Below, one piece after another: positions 4,975-59,794 of a DNA stretch of 64,000 nt; within the stretch, counting starts at the first letter, position 1, and every line of letters starts with the position of its first letter. The notes under the pieces were generated by a model, which had not been told where the DNA came from, made no database searches, and was given only the letters and a program-made list of their open reading frames with translations. The DNA lies in IMG/VR virus record IMGVR_UViG_3300010403_000705, positions 368,845 through 432,844 of that record, one strand, 5' to 3'. The translations under genes were made by a program, and so were the position numbers.

Positions 4975-6534
4975 ATGTATGAAACTAATTTAGCTGCCGT
5001 GCGACAATCCAAGCACCAAGAATTAAATAGTGGTGCTTATCCACTTGCTTCAGAAAGTGGAATGAAGATTAATCTGATCCTTGATCAGATCAATACCACT
5101 GCCCCAGCAATTTCTTTAGATCCTAGTGAATTAGGTGATATTATTACTGCACATGGTAGAATTACAGCTATTCGTAAGTCAGGTGGTATTACTTTTATAA
5201 AGATTTTTGATTCTACCGGCTCATTACAATTAATTGCCAGTCGATCAGTTTTACTTAATTATGAACAACTTAAGCTCTTAGATTTGGGAGATATAGTTGA
5301 AATTCAAGGTAAGATGTGTCGTTCAAAGACTAGTGAACCATCTCTTTTAATTATTCAATGGTCAGTACTCACTAAGTCACATCGCCCGCCACCCGAAAAA
5401 TATTTGGGTATTTCAAATGTTGAAACTAAGTATCGAAAGAGATATTTAGATCTCATGAGTTCTGATGAGAGCCGTGCTGTATTTACTATTAGGAGTTACA
5501 TTATACGTTCTCTACGTGAGTTCATGGAACGTAATAACTTCATGGAAATGGAAACTTCTACTCTAAACACTATAAATAGTGGAGCTAATGCTTTACCATT
5601 TATTACACGACATAATTATCTAGAAATAGATCTATTTTTACGTATTGCGCCAGAACTCTATCTCAAGAGATTGTTAGTCGGTGGATACGATAAGGTTTTT
5701 GAAATAGGTAGAAATTATAGAAATGAAGGCGTATCTACACGTCATAATCCAGAGTTTACTATGATGGAATTCTATGAAACCTACGGTAGGTTTCCAGATT
5801 TGATTTCCTACACCAAGGAAATGCTACTTTATGTTGATAATTATTTAGAAAATTTAAAGGGCAATTTTGCTTATTCATACTTCCAAGAATGGAAAAATAA
5901 GAGATCCTTTACTTTATCTGCATTCAAAGTAATTACCATGTCAGAAGCTGTTAACAATGCATGCGCTAAGTTTGGCGTGACTATTGACAACCTTGGTGTG
6001 CATATTAATGACATTGATAGTCTTCAGTCAAAGAAAATTGATATTAATAGTCTATTAAATGATTTAGAATCTTGCCCTTCACAAGGCAGATTGACATCAA
6101 TATTATTCGAGTATTTTGCTGAACCATTCTTAACAGAAGATTATCGAGAAACTATTAATGGCGTCTCATATTCTGTTCCAGTATTTATTACAGAATATCC
6201 AACAGAAATTTGTCCACTTGCTAGAAAGAATGATCAAAACCCTAATGTTTGTGATAGATTTGAGTTGTTTGTAGATGGCAGGGAGTTATGCAATGCATTC
6301 CAAGAATTGAATGATCCTAATGAACAGGCTAGTAGATTTCAAGAACAACTTGAATTAAATCAAAAAGATCCTATGGGTTATGATGAAGATTACATTGAAG
6401 CATTACAATATGGTATGCCACCATCAATTGGTTTTGGTATGGGAATAGATCGTTTAGTTATGTTATTAACTAATTCTACATCTATTAAGGATGTTATTTT
6501 GTTTCCTACATTAAAAAAGGTTAATAATGTCTAA
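4975..6534 (+). CDS. lysS: Lysine--tRNA ligase, class II
   Basis: OB-fold N-terminus, YRKRYLDL, LRIAPELYLKRL, YRNEGVSTRHNPEF, GMGIDRL, VILFP. Confidence 0.95.
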   Translation: MYETNLAAVRQSKHQELNSGAYPLASESGMKINLILDQINTTAPAISLDPSELGDIITAHGRITAIRKSGGITFIKIFDSTGSLQLIASRSVLLNYEQLKLLDLGDIVEIQGKMCRSKTSEPSLLIIQWSVLTKSHRPPPEKYLGISNVETKYRKRYLDLMSSDESRAVFTIRSYIIRSLREFMERNNFMEMETSTLNTINSGANALPFITRHNYLEIDLFLRIAPELYLKRLLVGGYDKVFEIGRNYRNEGVSTRHNPEFTMMEFYETYGRFPDLISYTKEMLLYVDNYLENLKGNFAYSYFQEWKNKRSFTLSAFKVITMSEAVNNACAKFGVTIDNLGVHINDIDSLQSKKIDINSLLNDLESCPSQGRLTSILFEYFAEPFLTEDYRETINGVSYSVPVFITEYPTEICPLARKNDQNPNVCDRFELFVDGRELCNAFQELNDPNEQASRFQEQLELNQKDPMGYDEDYIEALQYGMPPSIGFGMGIDRLVMLLTNSTSIKDVILFPTLKKVNNV

Positions 6535-9336: not shown

Positions 9337-10677
9337 ATGAATAGAGTTAGATTTGCTCCCAGCCCTACTGGATCTCTTCATGTAGGAGGAGTTCGTACAG
9401 CCTTATATAATTGGTTATGGTCTAAGAAAATTGGTGGTCAATTTATATTACGTATTGAAGATACTGATTTTATTAGAAATGATCCATCAAGTTATGATAA
9501 TATTTTACGAACTTTAGATTGGTTAGGTTTACATTGGGATGAGGGTCCAGATATTAATGGTAAATTTGGTCCTTATACTCAATCAGATAGGCGAGATTTT
9601 TATAAGGCATTTGCAAATTCTTTAATTGCTGATGGCAAAGCATACCGTTGCAATTGTAGTATGCAACAATTGATGCAATGGAAATCGCAATCTCCTAATT
9701 GGAAATATCCTGGCATTTGTAGGGACAAGAATATTGACTCTAGTAACTCACATGTTGTAAGACTAAAAGTAGATACTGATGCTATAATTTCATATAATGA
9801 TTTAGTTTTTGGAAAAATAACAACTCCTACATCCTCATTATATGATTTTGTTTTGCTTAGGGAAAATGGTATTCCACTTTATAATTTTGCAGCTGTTGTG
9901 GATGATCATTTAATGCATATTGATTTAGTAGCTAGAGGTCGTGATCATATGATTAATACTCCCAATCAAATTTTATTATATAATGCTTTTGGCTGGGACC
10001 TCCCATCGTTTGCGCATCTTCCTATGCTATTAAACATGCAAGGAGACAAACTTTCTAAAAGAGATGGATCAGTCTCAGTAAATGAGTTTAGAAAACTTGG
10101 ATTTTCTGCCAACGGGTTATTAAATTATTTATTAAGATTTGGTTGGTCTCACGGTGACCAAGAACTTTTCTCTATGGGGGAAATGATTGAATTGTTTTCT
10201 TGGGAATCATGTAAAAAATCGGATGGTCGATTTGACATGGCAAAAGCACTTGCTATTAATGGTAAAAACTTGATGAGGTCCAATTTAGTATCTAATGAAA
10301 CATATATTAAAGATTTAGCGTCATTTGGAATTTGTGCAGATGATAAAATTATTGAAATGGTACGAGCCAAGGCTAAGTCCTACCTAGAAGCAAAAGAATT
10401 ATTATCCTTTTTGGTAGATGGTGCATTAACTAATTATCCTATGGATATTCCAGAAGATGGAAAAATTCATATCAGCAATTTGTTAAAAATTTACTCGCAA
10501 CTATCTTTAATAGATAAAGATGCATTAGTATTAGCGACTAAATCTTATTGCCAAGAAAATAATTTAAATTTTCCAAATATTTCTCAATTGTTAAGACATT
10601 ATTTTACTGGTAAAACGATTGGTCCAGATATTTATAAAATTATAGAATATTTATGTCATTACAAAAATATCCATTGA
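9337..10677 (+). CDS. gltX: Glutamate--tRNA ligase
   Basis: RFAPSPTG, HVGG (HIGH), LRIEDTD, YNFAAVVDD, KLSKR. Confidence 0.93.
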   Translation: MNRVRFAPSPTGSLHVGGVRTALYNWLWSKKIGGQFILRIEDTDFIRNDPSSYDNILRTLDWLGLHWDEGPDINGKFGPYTQSDRRDFYKAFANSLIADGKAYRCNCSMQQLMQWKSQSPNWKYPGICRDKNIDSSNSHVVRLKVDTDAIISYNDLVFGKITTPTSSLYDFVLLRENGIPLYNFAAVVDDHLMHIDLVARGRDHMINTPNQILLYNAFGWDLPSFAHLPMLLNMQGDKLSKRDGSVSVNEFRKLGFSANGLLNYLLRFGWSHGDQELFSMGEMIELFSWESCKKSDGRFDMAKALAINGKNLMRSNLVSNETYIKDLASFGICADDKIIEMVRAKAKSYLEAKELLSFLVDGALTNYPMDIPEDGKIHISNLLKIYSQLSLIDKDALVLATKSYCQENNLNFPNISQLLRHYFTGKTIGPDIYKIIEYLCHYKNIH

Positions 10678-10703: not shown

Positions 10704-11324
10704 ATGAGTAAAGATCGAATAACAACATCGCCTAATCTATTAGAATCCTCACCTTTACATCATGAAGCTAGAACACTAGGAGATATTCATTTCCGAGCTT
10801 GGTCACATAATGTACAAGATAAGTATAAAGGGATGGCGGTAGAAGATATTAAAGATGCGTTACAAAAAACATCTTTGCCATATGCTGTATGTTTTGAGCA
10901 TTGGATTGGTGATTTTAATATGGGTACTGGCATACGTAACGCAAATGCTTTTAATGCTAGGGAAGTTTTTTATATTGGTGATAAAAAATGGGATCGCCGA
11001 TCAGCAGTAGGGGTGCATAATTATATTGATGTTAAATGGGTTCCCACAATAGAAGAATTTCTATCTTTAAAAGATAGATATGTTTTCATCGGAGTTGATA
11101 ATATCCCTGGCTCTGTACCGTTAGTGAACTTTAAATGGCCAAAAAATACTTTAATGATTTTTGGTGAAGAAGGTGTGGGTCTTACTCCAGAAATACAATC
11201 ACATTGTGAAGCTATTGTAGCTATTGAAATGTTTGGCAGTGTTCGATCTCTTAATTGTGGAACAGCATCGGGTATTGTAATGTATGATTTTGTATCTAAA
11301 TTAGGAAATATTTATGAAAAGTAA
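10704..11324 (+). CDS. TrmH/SpoU family RNA 2'-O-methyltransferase
   Basis: NMGTGIRNANAF, FGEEGVGL, VRSLNCGTASGI. Confidence 0.88.
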   Translation: MSKDRITTSPNLLESSPLHHEARTLGDIHFRAWSHNVQDKYKGMAVEDIKDALQKTSLPYAVCFEHWIGDFNMGTGIRNANAFNAREVFYIGDKKWDRRSAVGVHNYIDVKWVPTIEEFLSLKDRYVFIGVDNIPGSVPLVNFKWPKNTLMIFGEEGVGLTPEIQSHCEAIVAIEMFGSVRSLNCGTASGIVMYDFVSKLGNIYEK

Positions 11325-14010: not shown

Positions 14011-14093
14011 TCAAATATAAAATTTGTAAAACTTACGACTCCCATCACACATTATATGTATGATGTACATTGTGCTCAAATTTTTGGATTAAT

Positions 14094-14624
14094 ATGATTA
14101 TAGCTCATGCGAGTAAAAACTCCCACTGTTCTTATTGTGGTTCATATTTTTCAGAACAGGAAAAGTGGCCAAGACGATGCATCATATGCGACAATATAAC
14201 ATATTGTAATCCTACACCAGTTAGCGTTTCCTTAATAAGGGTCTTAGTAGATTGTAATAAATTAGGCATTCTAGTTGTTAGAAGAGCTGCTGATCCTAAA
14301 TTTGGAGAGTGGGCATTACCAGGTGGGTATTTAGTAGTACAAGAAAGCTGGGAAGAAGGTGCAGTTCGCGAGCTTCATGAGGAAGTTGGAATTAAATTAG
14401 ATCCATCAAAAATTGAAACATATCATGTTTCAAATGCCACCGAAAACAGTAACTTACTAATTTTCCACACATACCAAGACATTATAATGTGGAATGAAAT
14501 ATTAGAACATTTCATTCCAAACAATGAAGTGTTAGATATAGATGTTTGTTTTCTACCTACGGAATTATGTTTTTCTACACATACAAAATGTCTAGAAAAA
14601 TATCTTAAAGAGATTTCTAAATAA
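14094..14624 (+). CDS. Zinc-ribbon NUDIX hydrolase (ADP-ribose pyrophosphatase-like)
   Basis: CSYCG...CIICD, NPTPV, WALPGG...AVRELHEEVG. Confidence 0.85.
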   Translation: MIIAHASKNSHCSYCGSYFSEQEKWPRRCIICDNITYCNPTPVSVSLIRVLVDCNKLGILVVRRAADPKFGEWALPGGYLVVQESWEEGAVRELHEEVGIKLDPSKIETYHVSNATENSNLLIFHTYQDIIMWNEILEHFIPNNEVLDIDVCFLPTELCFSTHTKCLEKYLKEISK

Positions 14625-14660: not shown

Positions 14661-14778
14661 GGAGCGATGGCGGAATTGATATACGCAAGCGGTAAAAAAC
14701 AGTGTATGATTTTTTTACCGCTTAATTAGTATAATACACTATACTAATTTATAGGTTTGACTCCTATTCGCTCCACCA
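14661..14778 (+). ncRNA. tRNA-shell RNA with two long complementary-loop hairpins
   Basis: GGAGCGA/TCGCTCC-ACCA, Leu-like D arm, T arm ATAGG-TTTGACT-CCTAT; 13-bp and 10-bp hairpins replace the anticodon and variable arms. Confidence 0.75.
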
Positions 14779-14798: not shown

Positions 14799-15026
14799 AT
14801 GAAAAAAATCACACTATTAGCAGTTATACTAGTAATAGGATGTCAGCAAGAACCAATACCTATAACCAAAGAAATTATACCTAGGAATACACATGTCGCA
14901 CCGTTTACATTGGAACAATGTGATGAAATACTTCAAAAAGCTGAAAATGAAACTTTTTTTCAAGGTATGCAAGCCCGCGCAACTTTAGCTACGGCTTGTT
15001 ACAATAGTTTAACAGTAAAAAGATAA
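14799..15026 (+). CDS. Small lipoprotein
   Basis: MKKITLLAVILVIGC lipobox. Confidence 0.65.
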   Translation: MKKITLLAVILVIGCQQEPIPITKEIIPRNTHVAPFTLEQCDEILQKAENETFFQGMQARATLATACYNSLTVKR

Positions 15027-15034
15027 TTATTTAG

Positions 15035-15418
15035 ATGTATAGCGTATCTCAATATCATAATGATAAATATGGTAATGTAATAGAAATTTCTATCGATAAG
15101 AATGGAATCTATGAAACACCTTTTAAAGCCATTGCGCAAGTAAAACTTATTAGAAGATTATGGTCAGAAAATCATAATGATAAAATTAGAATATTAATCA
15201 ATAAACAAGTTTTAACCATTAAAGAGATGGAAAAATGGTGCCTGGAGGAATACAAGCTTTTACCAAAGTGTAAAAATTGCGCTATTTGTTTAAAAGAAAG
15301 AATCTATACTCATCCTTTGTCTAAGACGAGCATTTTTTGCTCACAAAAATGCGCAGATGTAGATTATAATTACGAAATAGAAAAAATGAAAGATGAAGAA
15401 GAAATAGATTATTTATAG
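15035..15418 (+). CDS. Hypothetical zinc-finger protein
   Basis: CKNC...FCSQKC (TRASH-like). Confidence 0.6.
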   Translation: MYSVSQYHNDKYGNVIEISIDKNGIYETPFKAIAQVKLIRRLWSENHNDKIRILINKQVLTIKEMEKWCLEEYKLLPKCKNCAICLKERIYTHPLSKTSIFCSQKCADVDYNYEIEKMKDEEEIDYL

Positions 15419-26155: not shown

Positions 26156-26291
26156 TAAAATGGCAAAATTATGGTTTTTAAAGTTTAAAAAAGATAATCG
26201 ATGTTAAAAAAATAACTAGGACTAAGTTATATCATTATCATTAATTATCTGTTTATCGTTGAAATTTTTGTTCAAATATAAGGAATGTATT

Positions 26292-27851
26292 ATGTCTTCA
26301 AAAAAGTTATTTTCTAATAAGTCTGTGGATGTTAAGTTAGTTAAACCAACTGATACAGTAAATAATGCTGGTGGTCAAGCCTATTCTTTAGATGATAAGG
26401 CAGCCTTGGCTCAATTAGCCATGACGGGATGTTTCAATGGTACTTATTATGTTTCTGATGAAGATCAATTAAAAAAAGTATTAGATTTAGCAAATAAATT
26501 GCCAGCAAAATATGTTGCACAACTAGCTGTTTATTCTCGTCAATATGGTTTAATGAAAGATATGCCAGCAGTTTTGGCAGCGGTAGTGGCAGGTAAGGAT
26601 TCAGATCTTTTATCAAAAATTTTTGATAAGGTAGTAGATTCCCCCAAAATGTTAAGAAATTTTGTACAAATTCTTCGTTCAGGAGTAGTAGGTCGCAAAT
26701 CTTTAGGCACTAGACCTAAGAAATTGGTTCAAAAATACCTTGAATCTTTAACTGACGAACAATTATTTATGGCTGATGTTGGAAACGACCCATCTTTACA
26801 AGATGTAATTAAATTGGTTCATCCTAAACCAACTACCAAACAACGTTCTGCTATGTTTGCATATCTCTTAAATAAAGAATATTCCCAGGATGATTTATCT
26901 TTATTAGTAAGACAATTTGAGGACTTTAAAAAGGACATGTCCAAGGACATTCCTAATGTACCTTTTCAAAAATTAACTGCTTTACCACTTACTTCTGATC
27001 ATTGGAAAAAAATTGCTTCAAATGCCACTTGGAATCAAATCAGACAAAATCTTAATACATTCGCTCGTCATAATGTCTTAAGTGATCAGGCATTATTGAA
27101 TCTTATATGTTCTAGAATAGAGGATAAGGAATTAGTTAAAAGAGCTAGAGTATTTCCTTATCAGCTTTTTACCACGTTTCAAAATTTGGAATCAAGTATA
27201 CCAACTAAGATCTCAGTTGCTTTACAAAAAGCTGCTGAACATGCATTGGAAAATATTCCAGAATTTAAAGGTAAAGTCTATGTTATGGTAGATACTTCTG
27301 GTTCTATGAGTTCGCCAGTGACTGGTAAACGTGGTACAGCTACTACAAAAATGTCTTGCATTGATGTTGCTGCTTTAGTGGCGGCAGCTATAATGAGAAA
27401 AAATTCTGATGTAGAAGTATTACCTTTTGATACTAAAGTTCATACACATAAACTGAATCCACTTGATTCGATTATGACTAATGCAAAGATTTTATCTGCT
27501 TTTGGTGGAGGAGGTACGAATTGTTCTCTTCCATTACAAGAATTGAATCGTAGAAAAGCCATGGGAGATTTAGTTATTTATGTAAGTGATAATGAATCTT
27601 GGGTTGATTCTAGCAGAGGAAAGGGGACTGCAACTATGAATGCTTGGGAAGTTTTTAAAGCTCGTAATAGAAATGCAAAATTAGTTTGTATTGATTTGAC
27701 ACCCAATACTTCTACACAAGTTTATTCTAAAAAAGACGTTCTTAACATCGGAGGTTTCTCAGATTCTGTATTTGAAGTGATAAATAAGTTCATGGAGTAC
27801 GGAAATGACGCAAATCTATGGATTAGAACAATTGAGCAGATTAAACTTTAA
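26292..27851 (+). CDS. Ro60/Rsr TROVE-vWA RNA-binding protein
   Basis: NNAGGQAY, LAQLAMTGCFNGTYY, ARVFPYQL, VDTSGSM MIDAS, GGGGTNCS, SDNESW, IGGFSD. Confidence 0.92.
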   Translation: MSSKKLFSNKSVDVKLVKPTDTVNNAGGQAYSLDDKAALAQLAMTGCFNGTYYVSDEDQLKKVLDLANKLPAKYVAQLAVYSRQYGLMKDMPAVLAAVVAGKDSDLLSKIFDKVVDSPKMLRNFVQILRSGVVGRKSLGTRPKKLVQKYLESLTDEQLFMADVGNDPSLQDVIKLVHPKPTTKQRSAMFAYLLNKEYSQDDLSLLVRQFEDFKKDMSKDIPNVPFQKLTALPLTSDHWKKIASNATWNQIRQNLNTFARHNVLSDQALLNLICSRIEDKELVKRARVFPYQLFTTFQNLESSIPTKISVALQKAAEHALENIPEFKGKVYVMVDTSGSMSSPVTGKRGTATTKMSCIDVAALVAAAIMRKNSDVEVLPFDTKVHTHKLNPLDSIMTNAKILSAFGGGGTNCSLPLQELNRRKAMGDLVIYVSDNESWVDSSRGKGTATMNAWEVFKARNRNAKLVCIDLTPNTSTQVYSKKDVLNIGGFSDSVFEVINKFMEYGNDANLWIRTIEQIKL

Positions 27852-34255: not shown

Positions 34256-34364
34256 AGCAAGAATAGTTTAATGGTAGAACGCTGGAGTCCATCCAGAAGC
34301 GGTACAAAAAGAATCCACGTGCACTGGGTAAAAAAATTCTTAGGTTCAAATCCTCCTTCTTGCT
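34256..34364 (+). ncRNA. tRNA-shell RNA with enlarged variable region
   Basis: AGCAAGAA/TTCTTGCT, D arm TAGTTTAATGGTAGAAC, CTGGA-GTCCA-TCCAG, ~45-nt insert, AGGTTCAAATCCT. Confidence 0.6.
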
Positions 34365-34441: not shown

Positions 34442-34548
34442 GGGTACGTACCTCAAATATGGATGAGGATCGGAGCGGGGGCGAATTGGTAAAATATTAG
34501 CTAGTCCCGAGCACTCTAAAGTTGTTGGTTCAAATTCAATCGTATCCA
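34442..34548 (+). ncRNA. tRNA-shell RNA with extended bulged anticodon-position stem and G3:U70
   Basis: GGGTACG/CGTATCC-A, CCTC/GAGG D stem, GTTGG-TTCAAAT-TCAAT T arm; ~55-nt central domain. Confidence 0.65.
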
Positions 34549-36227: not shown

Positions 36228-36300
36228 CAGAATATGTGGTCTAAGGGCAGGGCAGGTGGAAGTGTTCATCACGTTCAGGTTCGATTCCTGACATATTCTG
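36228..36300 (+). ncRNA. tRNA-like RNA with shrunken anticodon loop
   Basis: CAGAATATG/CATATTCTG, TCAGG-TTCGATT-CCTGA; loop of 4-6 nt; no CCA. Confidence 0.6.
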
Positions 36301-36385: not shown

Positions 36386-36494
36386 TGTAATTAAGTGTAA
36401 TGGTGCATCATCTCGATAATGATACGTACGTTCAATTCGTACACTTCCAGTCGGATATAGTAGAGAGAAAAAGGTTCGATTCCTTTAATTACAA
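36386..36494 (+). ncRNA. tRNA-shell RNA with a nested second T-arm
   Basis: TGTAATT/AATTACA, D arm, TCTC/GAGA enclosing GTACG-TTCAATT-CGTAC, outer AAAGG-TTCGATT-CCTTT. Confidence 0.65.
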
Positions 36495-47070: not shown

Positions 47071-47438
47071 ATATAGTTGGTTAAGATAATCGCTGCCAAT
47101 TTTAATTGGGAGAGGAAGTTCCGAACACCAATAAAGCAGAGTGCCAGTTAACGGCTGGGTGCAGTGATGCAACTGAAAGTGTAACAGAAAATAAACCGCC
47201 TGTAAAGGTAAGGGTGAAATGGTGAAAAATGGCGAACTAAGAGTGCGCCATGTGTAAGAGACCACCGCATATTTGGTAACAAATATGGCAATACAAACCA
47301 CACTCGGTGCAAGACAAATAGAAAACGTTTGAGAATCGCTTATTCGATGTTTTCGGGTTGTTGCTTGATCCAAATAGTGATATTTGGACTAGATTAATGA
47401 TTATCCTAGACAGAATTCGGGCTACTTATTAACTATAT
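47071..47438 (+). ncRNA. rnpB: RNase P RNA (bacterial type A-like)
   Basis: GAGGAAGTTCCG(AAC), GAAAGTGTAACAGAAA, AGGGTGAAA, GTGCAAGAC, ACAGAATTCGGGCTA; P1 ATATAGTTGGT/ATTAACTATAT. Confidence 0.92.
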
Positions 47439-47472
47439 TTCTTTTATAAAAGTTATCTAAAACATCAATACC

Positions 47473-53189: not shown

Positions 53190-54104
53190 ATGTCATTTAA
53201 GTTTGCTACGTTAGTCGGCTGTGCCATTGGTGATGCTTTAGGTAATCCATTCGAAACAAAATTATCATCATATCAACCTTTACAAGATTGGGATGGAACC
53301 TTCAAAGAAGGTGGAACATTTTGGTGGGGTCAACCAGGACAATATACTGATGATACATTGATGAGTTTAGGATTAGCTAATAGTTTAGTTCGCTGTAAGG
53401 GTTTTGATCCAGTAGATGCTGCCCAAGAATATTTAGCTTGGTATAATTCAAAAAATACGCGAGGTATTGGCGGCACAACTGCTCGAGCTATGCATAACTT
53501 AAAACAAGGTATTCCTTGGACACATAGTGGGATTACTGGCGACACAATTGGTGGTAATGGTACAGCTATGAGGGTATCTCCATTAGGAATCGTTTACAAA
53601 AACGATATCTATAAGCTACTGCAATATGCCATACAAGACGCTCAAATTACTCATAATGCAATAGAGCCAAAGCTAGGATCAATGGCAGTTGCAATTGGCA
53701 CAGCTATGTTAGCGTCTGGTAAATTTTCTTCGATAGATGTGTTAGAAAAATTAATAGAGATGTTGGTAGATTCTATAGTCAAATCTAAATTACTTTTAGT
53801 ACAAGAACATTTGAAAAAAGGTAGCGAACATAAAGATGCATTATTAGAAATTGGATCTTCTGGTTATGTTCCAGAAACTGTTGGAGCTGCTTATTACTGT
53901 TTACTAGCAAATAATAATTTCAAAGACACAGTGATTATGGCAGTTAAAGCAGGTGGTGATACAGATACCACTGCTGCAATTGCTGGAGCTATGGCTGGCA
54001 CCTTATATGGTATAGATGTCATTCCAGATGAATATAAAAATGGAGTTGAAAATTTTGAAATGCTTTCTTCATTAGATGAAGAACTTACTAATATCTTGAT
54101 ATAA
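53190..54104 (+). CDS. ADP-ribosylglycohydrolase (DraG/ARH family)
   Basis: GCAIGDALG, YTDDT, GNGTAMR, ITH, GGDTDTTAAIAGA. Confidence 0.92.
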   Translation: MSFKFATLVGCAIGDALGNPFETKLSSYQPLQDWDGTFKEGGTFWWGQPGQYTDDTLMSLGLANSLVRCKGFDPVDAAQEYLAWYNSKNTRGIGGTTARAMHNLKQGIPWTHSGITGDTIGGNGTAMRVSPLGIVYKNDIYKLLQYAIQDAQITHNAIEPKLGSMAVAIGTAMLASGKFSSIDVLEKLIEMLVDSIVKSKLLLVQEHLKKGSEHKDALLEIGSSGYVPETVGAAYYCLLANNNFKDTVIMAVKAGGDTDTTAAIAGAMAGTLYGIDVIPDEYKNGVENFEMLSSLDEELTNILI

Positions 54105-57712: not shown

Positions 57713-59794
57713 ATGAAACCTACAAACTTGTCTATAGAAAAATTTAGAAATATTGGTATTATGGCACATATTGATGCTGGTAAAACAACAGTATCAGAGC
57801 GCATATTATTTTATAGTGGACGTATTCATTCTATGGGTGAAGTTCATAACGGTGATACTGTTATGGATGATGATCCTCTTGAAATGAAGCACGGCATCAC
57901 CATTAATTCGGCTGCCACCACTGTGTTTTGGGGCAAAGGTGGAGATATCTATCGTATTAATTTGATTGATACACCTGGTCACATTGATTTTACAGTTGAA
58001 GTTGAAAGATCATTAAGAGTGCTTGATGGTGCTGTATGTGTTCTTGACGGATCCCAAGGTGTTGAACCGCAAACAGAACAAGTATGGAGACAAGCTGATA
58101 AATATAATGTTACTCGTATAATTTTTGTTAATAAGATGGATAAAGTTGGTGCCAGTTTTCAAATGTCTTTGGATTCTTTAAAAGAAAAATTGGGCATTAA
58201 ACCTGTAGCCATTCAATTGCCGGCAGGTGAAGAAGATAAATTCAAAGGTATTTATGATCTGGTTAACATGAAATTAATTTCTTTTGATGAGAAATCTTTA
58301 GGAAGACAATATGATATTTCGGAAATTCCTCTTTCTGCTTTGGAAGAAGTCAAGGCTGCCAGGAATCAAATGATTGAGTCGTTAGCCGATGTTAGTGATT
58401 CTATTATGGAAAAATTTTTGGAGGGTAACCTGAGCGCTATTTCGATTGATGAGATTAAAATTGCTCTTCGTAAAGGTACTATCAACAGAGATTTATATCC
58501 AGTCATGTGTGGATCCGCTCTTCGTAACAAGGGAGTTCAAATGTTATTGGATGCAATAATAGATTATTTACCTTCTCCCATTGATCTGCCAGCTATAGCT
58601 GCGTTATCTAGTACAACAGGTGAAATGTTAAATTTCAAACCAGAAGCTAATGAAAAATTAGCTGCCCTATCTTTTAAGGTCGTTAATGATAAAAATGGTG
58701 ATCTTACATTCATTAGAATTTATTCTGGAACTTTAAGTGCTGGAAGTGTGGTATTTAACTCTACTCGACAACATACAGAACGTATTTCAAAATTGGTTTT
58801 GGTTCATGCTTCAAATAAGAATGAAGAAATAAAATCAGCCGGACCAGGAACTATTGTTGCGGCAGTTGGATTAAAAAATACTTTTACTGGAGACACGTTG
58901 TGTGAAAAGAAAAATCCAATTACCTTGGAGAAGATGGAATTTCCAGAACCAGTAGTAGAATTATCTGTGGAACCAAAAACTAATGCTGACCAAGATAAAT
59001 TATCAGCCGGCTTACAGAAAATGCTTTTATCAGATCCCTCATTGAAAGCGGGTACCAATATTGAAACCGGGCAAACTGTCCTAAAAGGTATGGGCGAGCT
59101 TCATTTGGAGATTGTAGTTGAACGTTTGAAAAGCGTGCATGGTGTTGATGTTAATACTGGTAAACCACAAGTTTCCTATAAAGAAACTATCACTAAGTCA
59201 AGCCAAGCAGATTATAAGTATGTTCGACAATCAGGTGGTAGAGGTCAATATGGTCATGTAGTAATTACTATTACTCCTGCTCCTAGAGGATCTGGATTGA
59301 TTTTTGTTAATGATATTGTAGGAGGAACTATTCCAAAAGAATATGTTCCTGCTGTTGAGAAAGGTATTAAAGGAGCCATGGAAAAAGGTGTATTAGCTGA
59401 TTATCCAGTCGTAGATGTAGAAGTACATCTTGTAGATGGAAGCTATCATAATGTAGACTCAAGTACCAATGCATTCGAAATTGCTGGCTCATTGGCTTTT
59501 CAACAAGCTGCAAAGGGTGCTGGAATGGTTATTTTAGAACCAATTATGGCATTAGAAATTGTAACTCCAGAACAATTTATGGGAGATGTAATTGGTACTG
59601 TTTCATCTAGAGGTGGACATATTAAAGATTCTACTATTAGAGGTAATGCTAGAGTGCTTTCAGCTCAAATGCCATTGAGAAATTTATTTGGTTATACTAC
59701 CGAGCTTCGTGGTAGAACTCAAGGCAGAGCCACACCCTCAGCAATTTTTTCTCACTATGAAGTATGTAATCTAAAATTATCTGAACTGAAATGA
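57713..59794 (+). CDS. fusA: Elongation factor G
   Basis: RNIGIMAHIDAGKTT, DTPGHIDF, NKMD, GMGELHL, QSGGRGQYGHV, SYHNVDSS. Confidence 0.95.
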   Translation: MKPTNLSIEKFRNIGIMAHIDAGKTTVSERILFYSGRIHSMGEVHNGDTVMDDDPLEMKHGITINSAATTVFWGKGGDIYRINLIDTPGHIDFTVEVERSLRVLDGAVCVLDGSQGVEPQTEQVWRQADKYNVTRIIFVNKMDKVGASFQMSLDSLKEKLGIKPVAIQLPAGEEDKFKGIYDLVNMKLISFDEKSLGRQYDISEIPLSALEEVKAARNQMIESLADVSDSIMEKFLEGNLSAISIDEIKIALRKGTINRDLYPVMCGSALRNKGVQMLLDAIIDYLPSPIDLPAIAALSSTTGEMLNFKPEANEKLAALSFKVVNDKNGDLTFIRIYSGTLSAGSVVFNSTRQHTERISKLVLVHASNKNEEIKSAGPGTIVAAVGLKNTFTGDTLCEKKNPITLEKMEFPEPVVELSVEPKTNADQDKLSAGLQKMLLSDPSLKAGTNIETGQTVLKGMGELHLEIVVERLKSVHGVDVNTGKPQVSYKETITKSSQADYKYVRQSGGRGQYGHVVITITPAPRGSGLIFVNDIVGGTIPKEYVPAVEKGIKGAMEKGVLADYPVVDVEVHLVDGSYHNVDSSTNAFEIAGSLAFQQAAKGAGMVILEPIMALEIVTPEQFMGDVIGTVSSRGGHIKDSTIRGNARVLSAQMPLRNLFGYTTELRGRTQGRATPSAIFSHYEVCNLKLSELK

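Follow-up and report, generated by a model that had tools for sequence, protein, structure and literature searches.

In this study, we describe the gene of a small RNA related to leucine transfer RNA (tRNA-Leu), which occupies positions 14661-14778 (+) of a 64,000-nt stretch of the IMG/VR virus record IMGVR_UViG_3300010403_000705 (432,844 bp). This stretch, hereafter the window, is the final ~64 kb of the record. The gene is 118 nt long, including the discriminator base A73 and an encoded CCA end. Comparison with related contigs indicates that the gene is genuine and that it is conserved among a group of very large phages. The RNA has the acceptor, D and T arms of a tRNA-Leu, lacks an anticodon loop, and carries two long arms with terminal loops that are complementary to each other. 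On balance, we favor the view that it is a stable, non-decoding mimic of tRNA-Leu, which would act as a tRNA-shaped ligand for tRNA-handling proteins.

Fold of the RNA and covariation among its homologues

The minimum free energy fold of 14661-14778 is exactly a cloverleaf with both long arms, at -41.7 kcal/mol. Shuffled versions of the sequence reached -19.9 +/- 3.1 kcal/mol (z = -7.15); all 200 shuffles folded less well. The parts of the RNA are as follows.

14661-14667 / 14768-14774 (+): acceptor stem, 7 bp, GGAGCGA pairing with TCGCTCC
14670-14686 (+): D arm of tRNA-Leu type, with a 3-bp stem GCG/CGC (14670-72 / 14684-86) and the loop GAATTGATATA
14687-14723 (+): arm 1, at the anticodon-arm position, with a 13-bp stem (14687-14699 / 14711-14723) and an 11-nt loop (14700-14710)
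14702-14707 (+): kissing sequence of loop 1, GTGTAT
14724-14749 (+): arm 2, at the variable-arm position, with a 10-bp stem (14724-14733 / 14740-14749) and a 6-nt loop
14734-14739 (+): kissing sequence of loop 2, ATACAC, taking up the whole loop
14750 (+): equivalent of U48, a single U, partner of A15 in the Levitt pair
14751-14767 (+): T arm, ATAGG-TTTGACT-CCTAT
14768-14778 (+): 3' strand of the acceptor stem (TCGCTCC) and 3' end, with A73 at 14775 and CCA at 14776-14778

As RNA, the D loop reads GAAUUGAUAUA and carries A14, A15, G18 and A19. Together with U56 of the T loop, A19 replaces the universal G19:C56 elbow pair in compensated form. The loop of arm 1 is CAGTGTATGAT (as RNA CAGUGUAUGAU). 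Arm 2 directly abuts arm 1, with no linker nucleotide between them. A first-pass annotation, made from the letters of this DNA, had noticed the Leu-type D arm, A73, CCA, the 13-bp and 10-bp stems and the loop sequences, and we recovered all of them at the positions above. Its claim that the two loops hold exact complements is likewise borne out in the window, where the reverse complement of GTGTAT (14702-14707) is exactly ATACAC (14734-14739).

Standard searches overlook this gene. ARAGORN called 24 tRNAs in the 64-kb window, 14661-14778 not among them, and this segment had no Rfam match at gathering thresholds; relaxing the cutoff to E <= 10 did not bring up any tRNA-like match either. Homologues were found by other routes (loci are referred to by L numbers). 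Scanning the loci of Nudix homologues for a T arm with a matching acceptor stem yielded L119, L121 and L122, none of which is called by ARAGORN, and degenerate DNA patterns yielded L129 (from a JGI metagenome) together with L256, L278, L279 and L280 (IMG/VR contigs of 63-481 kb). From nine sequences we built a covariance model, R1, that contains no loop-loop pairs; its first search returned ten members at 87.6-124.3 bits and newly revealed L251. A search around homologues of the downstream protein described below added L283, L288, L289, L296, L297 and L298/L299, as well as the 5'-truncated copies L287 and L290. The collection comprises 16 distinct sequences including that of the window, 15 of them full-length and one the truncated L287 copy. 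All the homologues sit in syntenic loci of related contigs, several of which are 267-481 kb long. R1 scores are 63-124 bits for the 14 full-length homologues, 104.7 bits for the window and at most 67.5 bits for generic tRNA-Leu-like elements. The window RNA shows each of the properties that define the family, that is, an R1 score of ~63 bits or more, two arms with complementary loops, and a place in the syntenic block upstream of a gene for a 127-aa protein. Two further searches added nothing: the pattern GGAA..ACRCRRGCGGT.. returned unrelated sequences only, and a loose pattern run on genome contigs, followed by a structural filter, gave no family member among the matches listed. Rfam 15 has no matching family, and a literature search found no description of such an RNA.

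For the first nine sequences, RNAalifold predicted the cloverleaf and both arms, with compensatory changes in 19 of 28 pairs. We then aligned the 15 full-length sequences to the model (alignment A6). Standard base pairs fill 95.3% of the pair cells in A6, vs 75% with shuffled partners and 35-48% in controls in which the partners were slid by 1-3 columns. Changes on both sides occur in 33 of the 39 modelled pairs, and 0 of 500 shuffles reached the observed value of any of five measures. The acceptor, D and T helices are 100% paired in the family; both-side changes affect 5/7 acceptor pairs and 4/5 T pairs, and the D helix covaries as well. The same holds for the long arms, where the basal and distal helices of arm 1 have both-side changes in 9 of 10 pairs and the two helices of arm 2 in all nine modelled pairs. 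G:U pairs are frequent (for instance in 10/15 sequences at columns 28/69, the base of arm 1), and because such pairs are strand-specific, the RNA is read from the + strand. Arm lengths vary in the family, from 14 to 18 nt per strand in arm 1 and from 10 to 12 in arm 2. The sequences compared are related and not independent of one another; nine separate variants of the kissing pair argue for repeated compensation.

Pairing between the two terminal loops

In the window alone, the 6-bp Watson-Crick match between the loops arises in ~1.4% of loop shuffles, which is suggestive and not decisive. The family provides the decisive evidence. A complementary loop pair is present in 15 of the 15 full-length members, in nine different sequence pairs (loop 1 / loop 2).

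GUGUAU / AUACAC: window, L119
GUAUAU / AUAUAC: L121
GUGCA(U) / (A)UGCAC: L122, L278, L279, L280, L289
GUACAAU / AUUGUA(A)C: L256
GAGCUU / AAGC(A)UC: L129
GUGAUG / CAUCAC: L251, L288
AUGUAU / AUACAU: L283
GUGUG / CACAC: L297, L299
GUAUGU / ACAUAC: L296

Columns 46-50 of A6 are paired with columns 85-89 in 83% of the cells, with both-side changes in 5/5 pairs. Since R1 holds no loop-loop pairs, the alignment was not fitted to this pairing. Five members require a one-nucleotide bulge in loop 2. The weakest case is L289, with an extra bulge in loop 1, a contiguous run of 3 and a shuffle p of 0.51. Apart from L289, loop shuffles gave p = 0.005-0.10 per sequence, and the Fisher-combined p over nine representatives is 9e-9. 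When loop 2 partners were reassigned at random among these nine, the observed total was reached in 2 of 200,000 trials. As a negative control, we took 81 unrelated elongated Leu-like elements, 50 of which fold into at least two hairpins; only 3 of the 50 had p < 0.05, which is the chance level. Judged by its compensatory evolution, the pairing of the terminal loops into a Watson-Crick helix of 5-7 bp is a maintained feature of the family. Because complementary pairs are kept through nine variants, and in view of the permutation and shuffle statistics, we infer that the loops pair in vivo. Covariation of the two loops in homologues had been named in the first-pass annotation as a check on a kissing interaction, and the outcome is positive, with complementarity retained throughout.

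The kiss could form within one molecule or between two, and the first-pass annotation had allowed either. If loop 1 in one RNA paired with loop 2 in a second RNA, and vice versa, head-to-head dimers or chains would result, that is, a functional multimer. Covariation establishes pairing and is silent on this choice. Moreover, loop 2 is often wholly used by the helix (6/6 nt in the window), as in known intermolecular kisses, and the variable arm of class II tRNAs is normally directed away from the anticodon arm. Complete pairing of a 6-nt loop is indeed typical of coaxial intermolecular kissing complexes, which counts against a kiss within one molecule. On the other hand, we found that the length of arm 1 minus that of arm 2 is 5.0 +/- 1.0 nt per strand in 15/15 members (range 3.5-6.5). 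This difference roughly matches the kissing helix in length and is constant while the arms otherwise vary, which favors the intramolecular reading; a dimer would impose no such constraint. In addition, the absence of a linker places the two helices side by side, and both arms contain internal loops or A-U tracts that are possible hinges. Such a lock of neighboring helices is physically possible, because the Alu domain of the signal recognition particle (SRP) has two adjacent hairpins closed by a loop-loop pseudoknot (PMC8137916). Altogether, a kiss within one molecule is favored over reciprocal dimers, and we regard the latter as a doubtful alternative. Homodimers through the same loop, of the type formed by the dimerization initiation site of human immunodeficiency virus, are excluded, as the kissing sequences are not consistently palindromic.

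tRNA-Leu identity, neighboring genes and possible function

The discriminator base is A73 in 14 of the 15 members, and the same number have U8; the exception in both cases is L288, with U73 and A8. U48 (alignment column 102) and the A15:U48 pair are present in 15/15. The 19:56 elbow pair covaries, being A19:U56 in the window and apparently U19:A56 in L288. We thus found the features of a tRNA D/T elbow, namely U8, A14, A15:U48, G18, the 19:56 pair and a T loop of the form UUCRANY. The CCA end is encoded in 10/15 members, the other five having CAA, CUA or CGA. In E. coli, the identity set recognized by leucyl-tRNA synthetase (LeuRS) consists of A73, A15:U48, G18G19 and tertiary pairs that join the D loop to the T loop (PMC9976931). 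Neither the anticodon arm nor the long variable arm is required for charging, and a tRNA-Leu lacking both is still charged, and the anticodon arm is needed for editing by LeuRS, not for charging (PMC9976931). Given the conservation of the E. coli identity set, the RNA is probably charged by LeuRS; by analogy, an RNA without an anticodon arm might escape LeuRS proofreading.

In agreement with the first-pass reading of the element as a tRNA mimic, the three tRNA helices are fully paired with covariation and the 19:56 pair covaries. The same reading took the RNA to be non-decoding. This also held, as a 7-nt anticodon loop on a 5-bp stem, with U33, a Leu anticodon and purine 37, was found in none of the members, and loop 1 varies together with loop 2, unlike a fixed anticodon. 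On these grounds, a decoding tRNA-Leu was rejected. A hammerhead-like 'CUGAUG' in arm 2 of some members was also rejected, being neither conserved nor matched in Rfam.

The genes of the window that bear on the function of the RNA are the following.

14070-14624: Nudix open reading frame (ORF), upstream neighbor of the RNA
14799-15026 (+): lipoprotein-like ORF of 75 aa (MKKITLLAVILVIGCQQ...), between the RNA and the next gene
15035-15418 (+): gene of a 127-aa protein with an FCS/TRASH/MYND-like zinc finger, conserved downstream of the RNA
26259-27851 (+): Ro60/TROVE and vWA orthologue, 11.5 kb downstream of the RNA
47073-47440 (+): complete class A bacterial RNase P RNA (Rfam 247.5 bits, E = 2e-79)

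The 127-aa protein has four invariant cysteines (C-x2-C...FCS-x2-C) and an acidic tail, KDEEEIDYL (alignment A4), and its AlphaFold2 model has a pLDDT of 89. It has no match in Pfam, PHROG or PDB; fold and family searches returned weak similarities to zinc fingers only (MYND, FLZ, TRASH), and a profile search found ~55 cluster representatives at E < 1e-15. At least eight relatives have a homologue of this gene whose start codon follows the end of the RNA by 0-13 nt (L122, L129, L256, L278, L279, L280, L296 and L288). In the window the 75-aa ORF intervenes; the remaining members have a 146-aa ORF or an Endonuclease VII gene in this place, or a spacing of 0.3-0.8 kb. The 75-aa ORF has no Pfam or PHROG match, and tblastn found no homologue of it in nine related loci. 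The spacing between the RNA and the Nudix gene upstream of it is much more variable (37 nt in the window, up to ~3.1 kb elsewhere), so that the RNA is most tightly linked to the 127-aa gene. Gene order thus points to the zinc-finger protein as the most plausible specific partner of the RNA.

Our preferred reading, a non-decoding tRNA-Leu mimic, would work as follows. The RNA would be transcribed within a polycistronic message, from which it would have to be excised because the neighboring ORFs adjoin it within a few nucleotides. RNase P would make the 5' cut, as for phage tRNAs; an RNase P RNA is encoded by this phage itself. The loop-loop helix would then stack on arm 2 and close both arms into a rigid body, and this two-helix lower half could not enter the decoding site of the ribosome. 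The exposed upper half would remain bindable, and would probably be leucylated, by LeuRS. In this form, the RNA could act as a decoy, a sponge, an aminoacyl carrier or a scaffold of a ribonucleoprotein (RNP) for tRNA-handling proteins. More tentatively, the matured, leucylated RNA, kept off the ribosome, may form with the zinc-finger protein a phage RNP that diverts or exploits the Leu-tRNA machinery (LeuRS, EF-Tu, aminoacyl-transferases); we hold this extension with low confidence.

Several observations weigh against this interpretation. The RNA and the zinc-finger gene are separated by another ORF, or by more than 300 nt, in at least five genomes, and a block of ~10 genes is wholly syntenic, so that adjacency is weaker evidence of partnership than it appears. 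The five members with ends other than CCA would need 3' repair before charging, and L288 departs from the rest at positions 73 and 8. The identity rules for LeuRS are those of E. coli, and the host of these phages may follow others. Finally, the viral ('huge phage') nature of the contig is a reading based on IMG/VR and gene content.

Among the competing functions, the one that fares best is a cis-acting signal for processing or translation, in which a tRNA-shaped 'punctuation mark' would recruit RNase P and 3' cleavage and the released RNA would have no role of its own. The spacing fits this idea. The stop codon of the upstream ORF lies 1-8 nt before the first base of the RNA, and the next start codon is mostly 0-13 nt past its end (0 nt in L256 and L296). 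A separate promoter or terminator is not evident at the RNA locus, in a scan that was uninformative, and the phage encodes RNase P RNA. An intrinsic terminator at the U-run of arm 1 was rejected, as no G+C-rich hairpin precedes the run. However, an ordinary tRNA would suffice as such a signal, with no need for long arms, a loop helix in nine variants or a LeuRS identity set, and the gene downstream varies (lipoprotein ORF, Endonuclease VII, 146-aa ORF). We therefore consider a purely cis-acting role unlikely.

The Ro60 orthologue of the window raises another idea, that the RNA is a Y-RNA-like partner of phage Ro60 (TROVE), tethering it to a nuclease or gating it as YrlA does. Within ~4 kb on either side of the Ro60 gene, whose flanks are occupied by small ORFs, we found neither a YrlA-like RNA nor a T-arm motif nor an Rfam Y RNA, so this protein has no evident partner RNA nearby. 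YrlA itself is permuted with respect to tRNA; its acceptor-like stem is closed and its two ends lie in the Ro60-binding stem (Chen et al. 2014, PMC4201824). It carries the motif GNCGAAN0-1G near its 5' end, and reported Y RNAs lie at most 4 kb from Ro60, on the same strand (PMC4201824). Our RNA has instead the normal topology of a tRNA and a free ACCA end, lacks the motif in the window and in one homologue (both inspected by eye), and lies 11.5 kb from Ro60 and next to a different conserved protein gene. A YrlA-type Y RNA was rejected on these three counts of topology, motif and proximity, and a partnership with Ro60 appears improbable. Relatives of the Ro60 protein (66-81% identity) occur in IMGVR_UViG_3300036715_004471 (446 kb), 3300033069_001769 and 3300015360_001774.

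Least credible of all is a degenerate tRNA-Leu pseudogene, or a tRNA-Leu interrupted by removable inserts or introns: the scaffold clearly derives from tRNA-Leu, and hairpin inserts do occur in the anticodon loop of tRNA-Leu-like genes on other phage contigs (L084, L107), but compensatory changes affect 33 of 39 pairs while the neighboring proteins are only 40-60% identical, no member has a U33-NNN-R37 loop or a bulge-helix-bulge motif, the 13-bp helix of arm 1 has no interruption in the window, and deleting either arm leaves no anticodon. The intron or bulge-helix-bulge reading was rejected for want of bulges and of a residual anticodon.

Genomic context, other tRNA-like genes and significance

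The metagenome contig Ga0134123_10000001 (447,633 bp) carries a sequence identical to that of the window. No capsid or terminase gene was found within the 64-kb window, and neither the region nor the element nor the 127-aa protein has a relative in INPHARED (GenBank phages). Relatives share the conserved block SpoU - Nudix - LemA - TPM - Nudix - ... - 5'-3' exonuclease, and the closest relative of the Nudix protein, P0003, is 59% identical. Further genes of the window are listed below.

4975-6534: class II aminoacyl-tRNA synthetase (Asp/Lys/Asn type)
9337-10677: aminoacyl-tRNA synthetase of GluRS/GlnRS type
10704-11324: SpoU-family RNA methylase
53190-54104: ADP-ribosylglycohydrolase
57713-59794: EF-G

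In addition, more than 20 tRNA genes form a dispersed cluster in the window. An RNase P RNA carried by a phage would be unusual, and it matches this large tRNA set. ORFs of homing-endonuclease type (Endonuclease VII, HNH) stand beside the tRNA-like gene in L286:67-501, L287:123-557 and a JGI 3300069203 contig, which suggests that the RNA locus is a target for mobile endonucleases.

Odd tRNA-like genes occur in the tRNA cluster of the window at 34257-34364, 34442-34547, 36386-36493 and 36229-36300. One is 108 nt long, scores 38.7 bits with the Rfam tRNA model and is missed by ARAGORN; two are further elongated candidates, in one of which a second T arm and an acceptor 3' strand are embedded; and one is an ARAGORN 'tRNA-???' with a 2-nt anticodon. 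These genes fold no better than shuffles (z between -0.6 and -1.8). Elsewhere, a loose D-arm/T-arm pattern matched more than 116 IMG/VR loci with a tRNA-Leu D arm, a T arm and a matching 7-bp acceptor stem. The acceptor of these elements (L001-L116) is often AGTCAGG/CCTGACT, and the middle is 55-85 nt vs ~35 nt (for example L030:13023-13125 and L027:2397-2522); those tested are missed by ARAGORN, and some are caught by the Rfam tRNA model. This heterogeneous set was not pooled with the family, as its R1 scores are at most 67.5 bits, its middles are diverse and its loops show no general complementarity. L084:3275-3403 (-) and L107:115-235 (-) resemble tRNA-Leu(UAA) with a hairpin insert of 33-44 nt between nucleotides 34/35 (CUU|insert|AAAA). 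The group I intron of cyanobacterial tRNA-Leu occupies this same site, but the insert is far too short to be one. Elongated tRNA-Leu-like genes are also present in cultured Sphingobacterium genomes (L230, L241, L212 and L165), where they may lie in prophages. The middle motifs GUUAUAAGUUGAAACGC and AAUAGUAUCC are common to L230, L241 and the viral loci L270 and L012, and the middles of L212 and L165 are different from those of L230 and L241.

How does the RNA of the very large phages compare with known molecules? Like bacterial class II tRNA-Leu, it has a 7-bp acceptor, A73, CCA, a 3-bp D stem, A14, A15:U48, G18, the elbow contacts and a long extra arm; unlike it, it lacks an anticodon loop, its arms are longer, its loops are paired, and it is detected neither by ARAGORN nor by the Rfam tRNA model. 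'Minimalist' variants of E. coli tRNA-Leu, which lack both arms, are nevertheless leucylated (Larkin et al. 2002, summarised in PMC9976931). The SRP Alu domain RNA (PMC8137916) is similar in that neighboring hairpins from one junction pair through their loops into a compact tRNA-like body; it differs in its unrelated sequence, in having only 2-3 tertiary pairs and no acceptor end, and in binding SRP9/14. With YrlA and the mycobacteriophage Y RNAs, our RNA shares a phage-borne, noncoding mimicry of the tRNA elbow and a Ro60 gene in the window. The tRNA-like domain of transfer-messenger RNA (tmRNA) is a chargeable mimic that likewise lacks an anticodon. It differs in having no D stem, a tag reading frame, pseudoknots, charging with Ala via G3:U70 and a much greater length, and tmRNA was rejected as an identification because ARAGORN found no tmRNA, Rfam gave no match and the RNA is only 118 nt long. 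The stable RNAs C and D of phage T4 (species 1 and 2) are located in a tRNA cluster, have tRNA-like ends and are co-processed with tRNAs. By description, our RNA resembles them in being phage-encoded and tRNA-sized or larger. To our knowledge, neither has a kissing-loop architecture or a tRNA-Leu identity set. Known tRNA mimics thus include YrlA, the tRNA-like domain of tmRNA, viral tRNA-like structures and the T4 stable RNAs. The new combination is that of an RNA derived from tRNA-Leu, with normal tRNA topology, without an anticodon and with its arms locked by a kissing loop.

The usual explanations for the tRNAs of phages are codon usage and evasion of anticodon nucleases. Neither explanation fits this RNA, which keeps the parts of tRNA-Leu recognized by enzymes and has discarded decoding. 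About 60 nt are devoted to a two-helix body locked by its loops, with compensatory upkeep across distantly related huge phages. The RNA would be a natural counterpart of the engineered 'minimalist' tRNA-Leu molecules and a small example of a kissing complex, intramolecular or dimerising, on a tRNA scaffold. It also provides a lead toward the function of an uncharacterised family of zinc-finger proteins, and a warning that tRNA-derived genes of this kind escape tRNA finders and Rfam. If the proposed role of the RNA and its partner protein holds true, it would represent a tRNA effector that is chargeable but does not decode, and a previously undescribed class of phage-host interaction.

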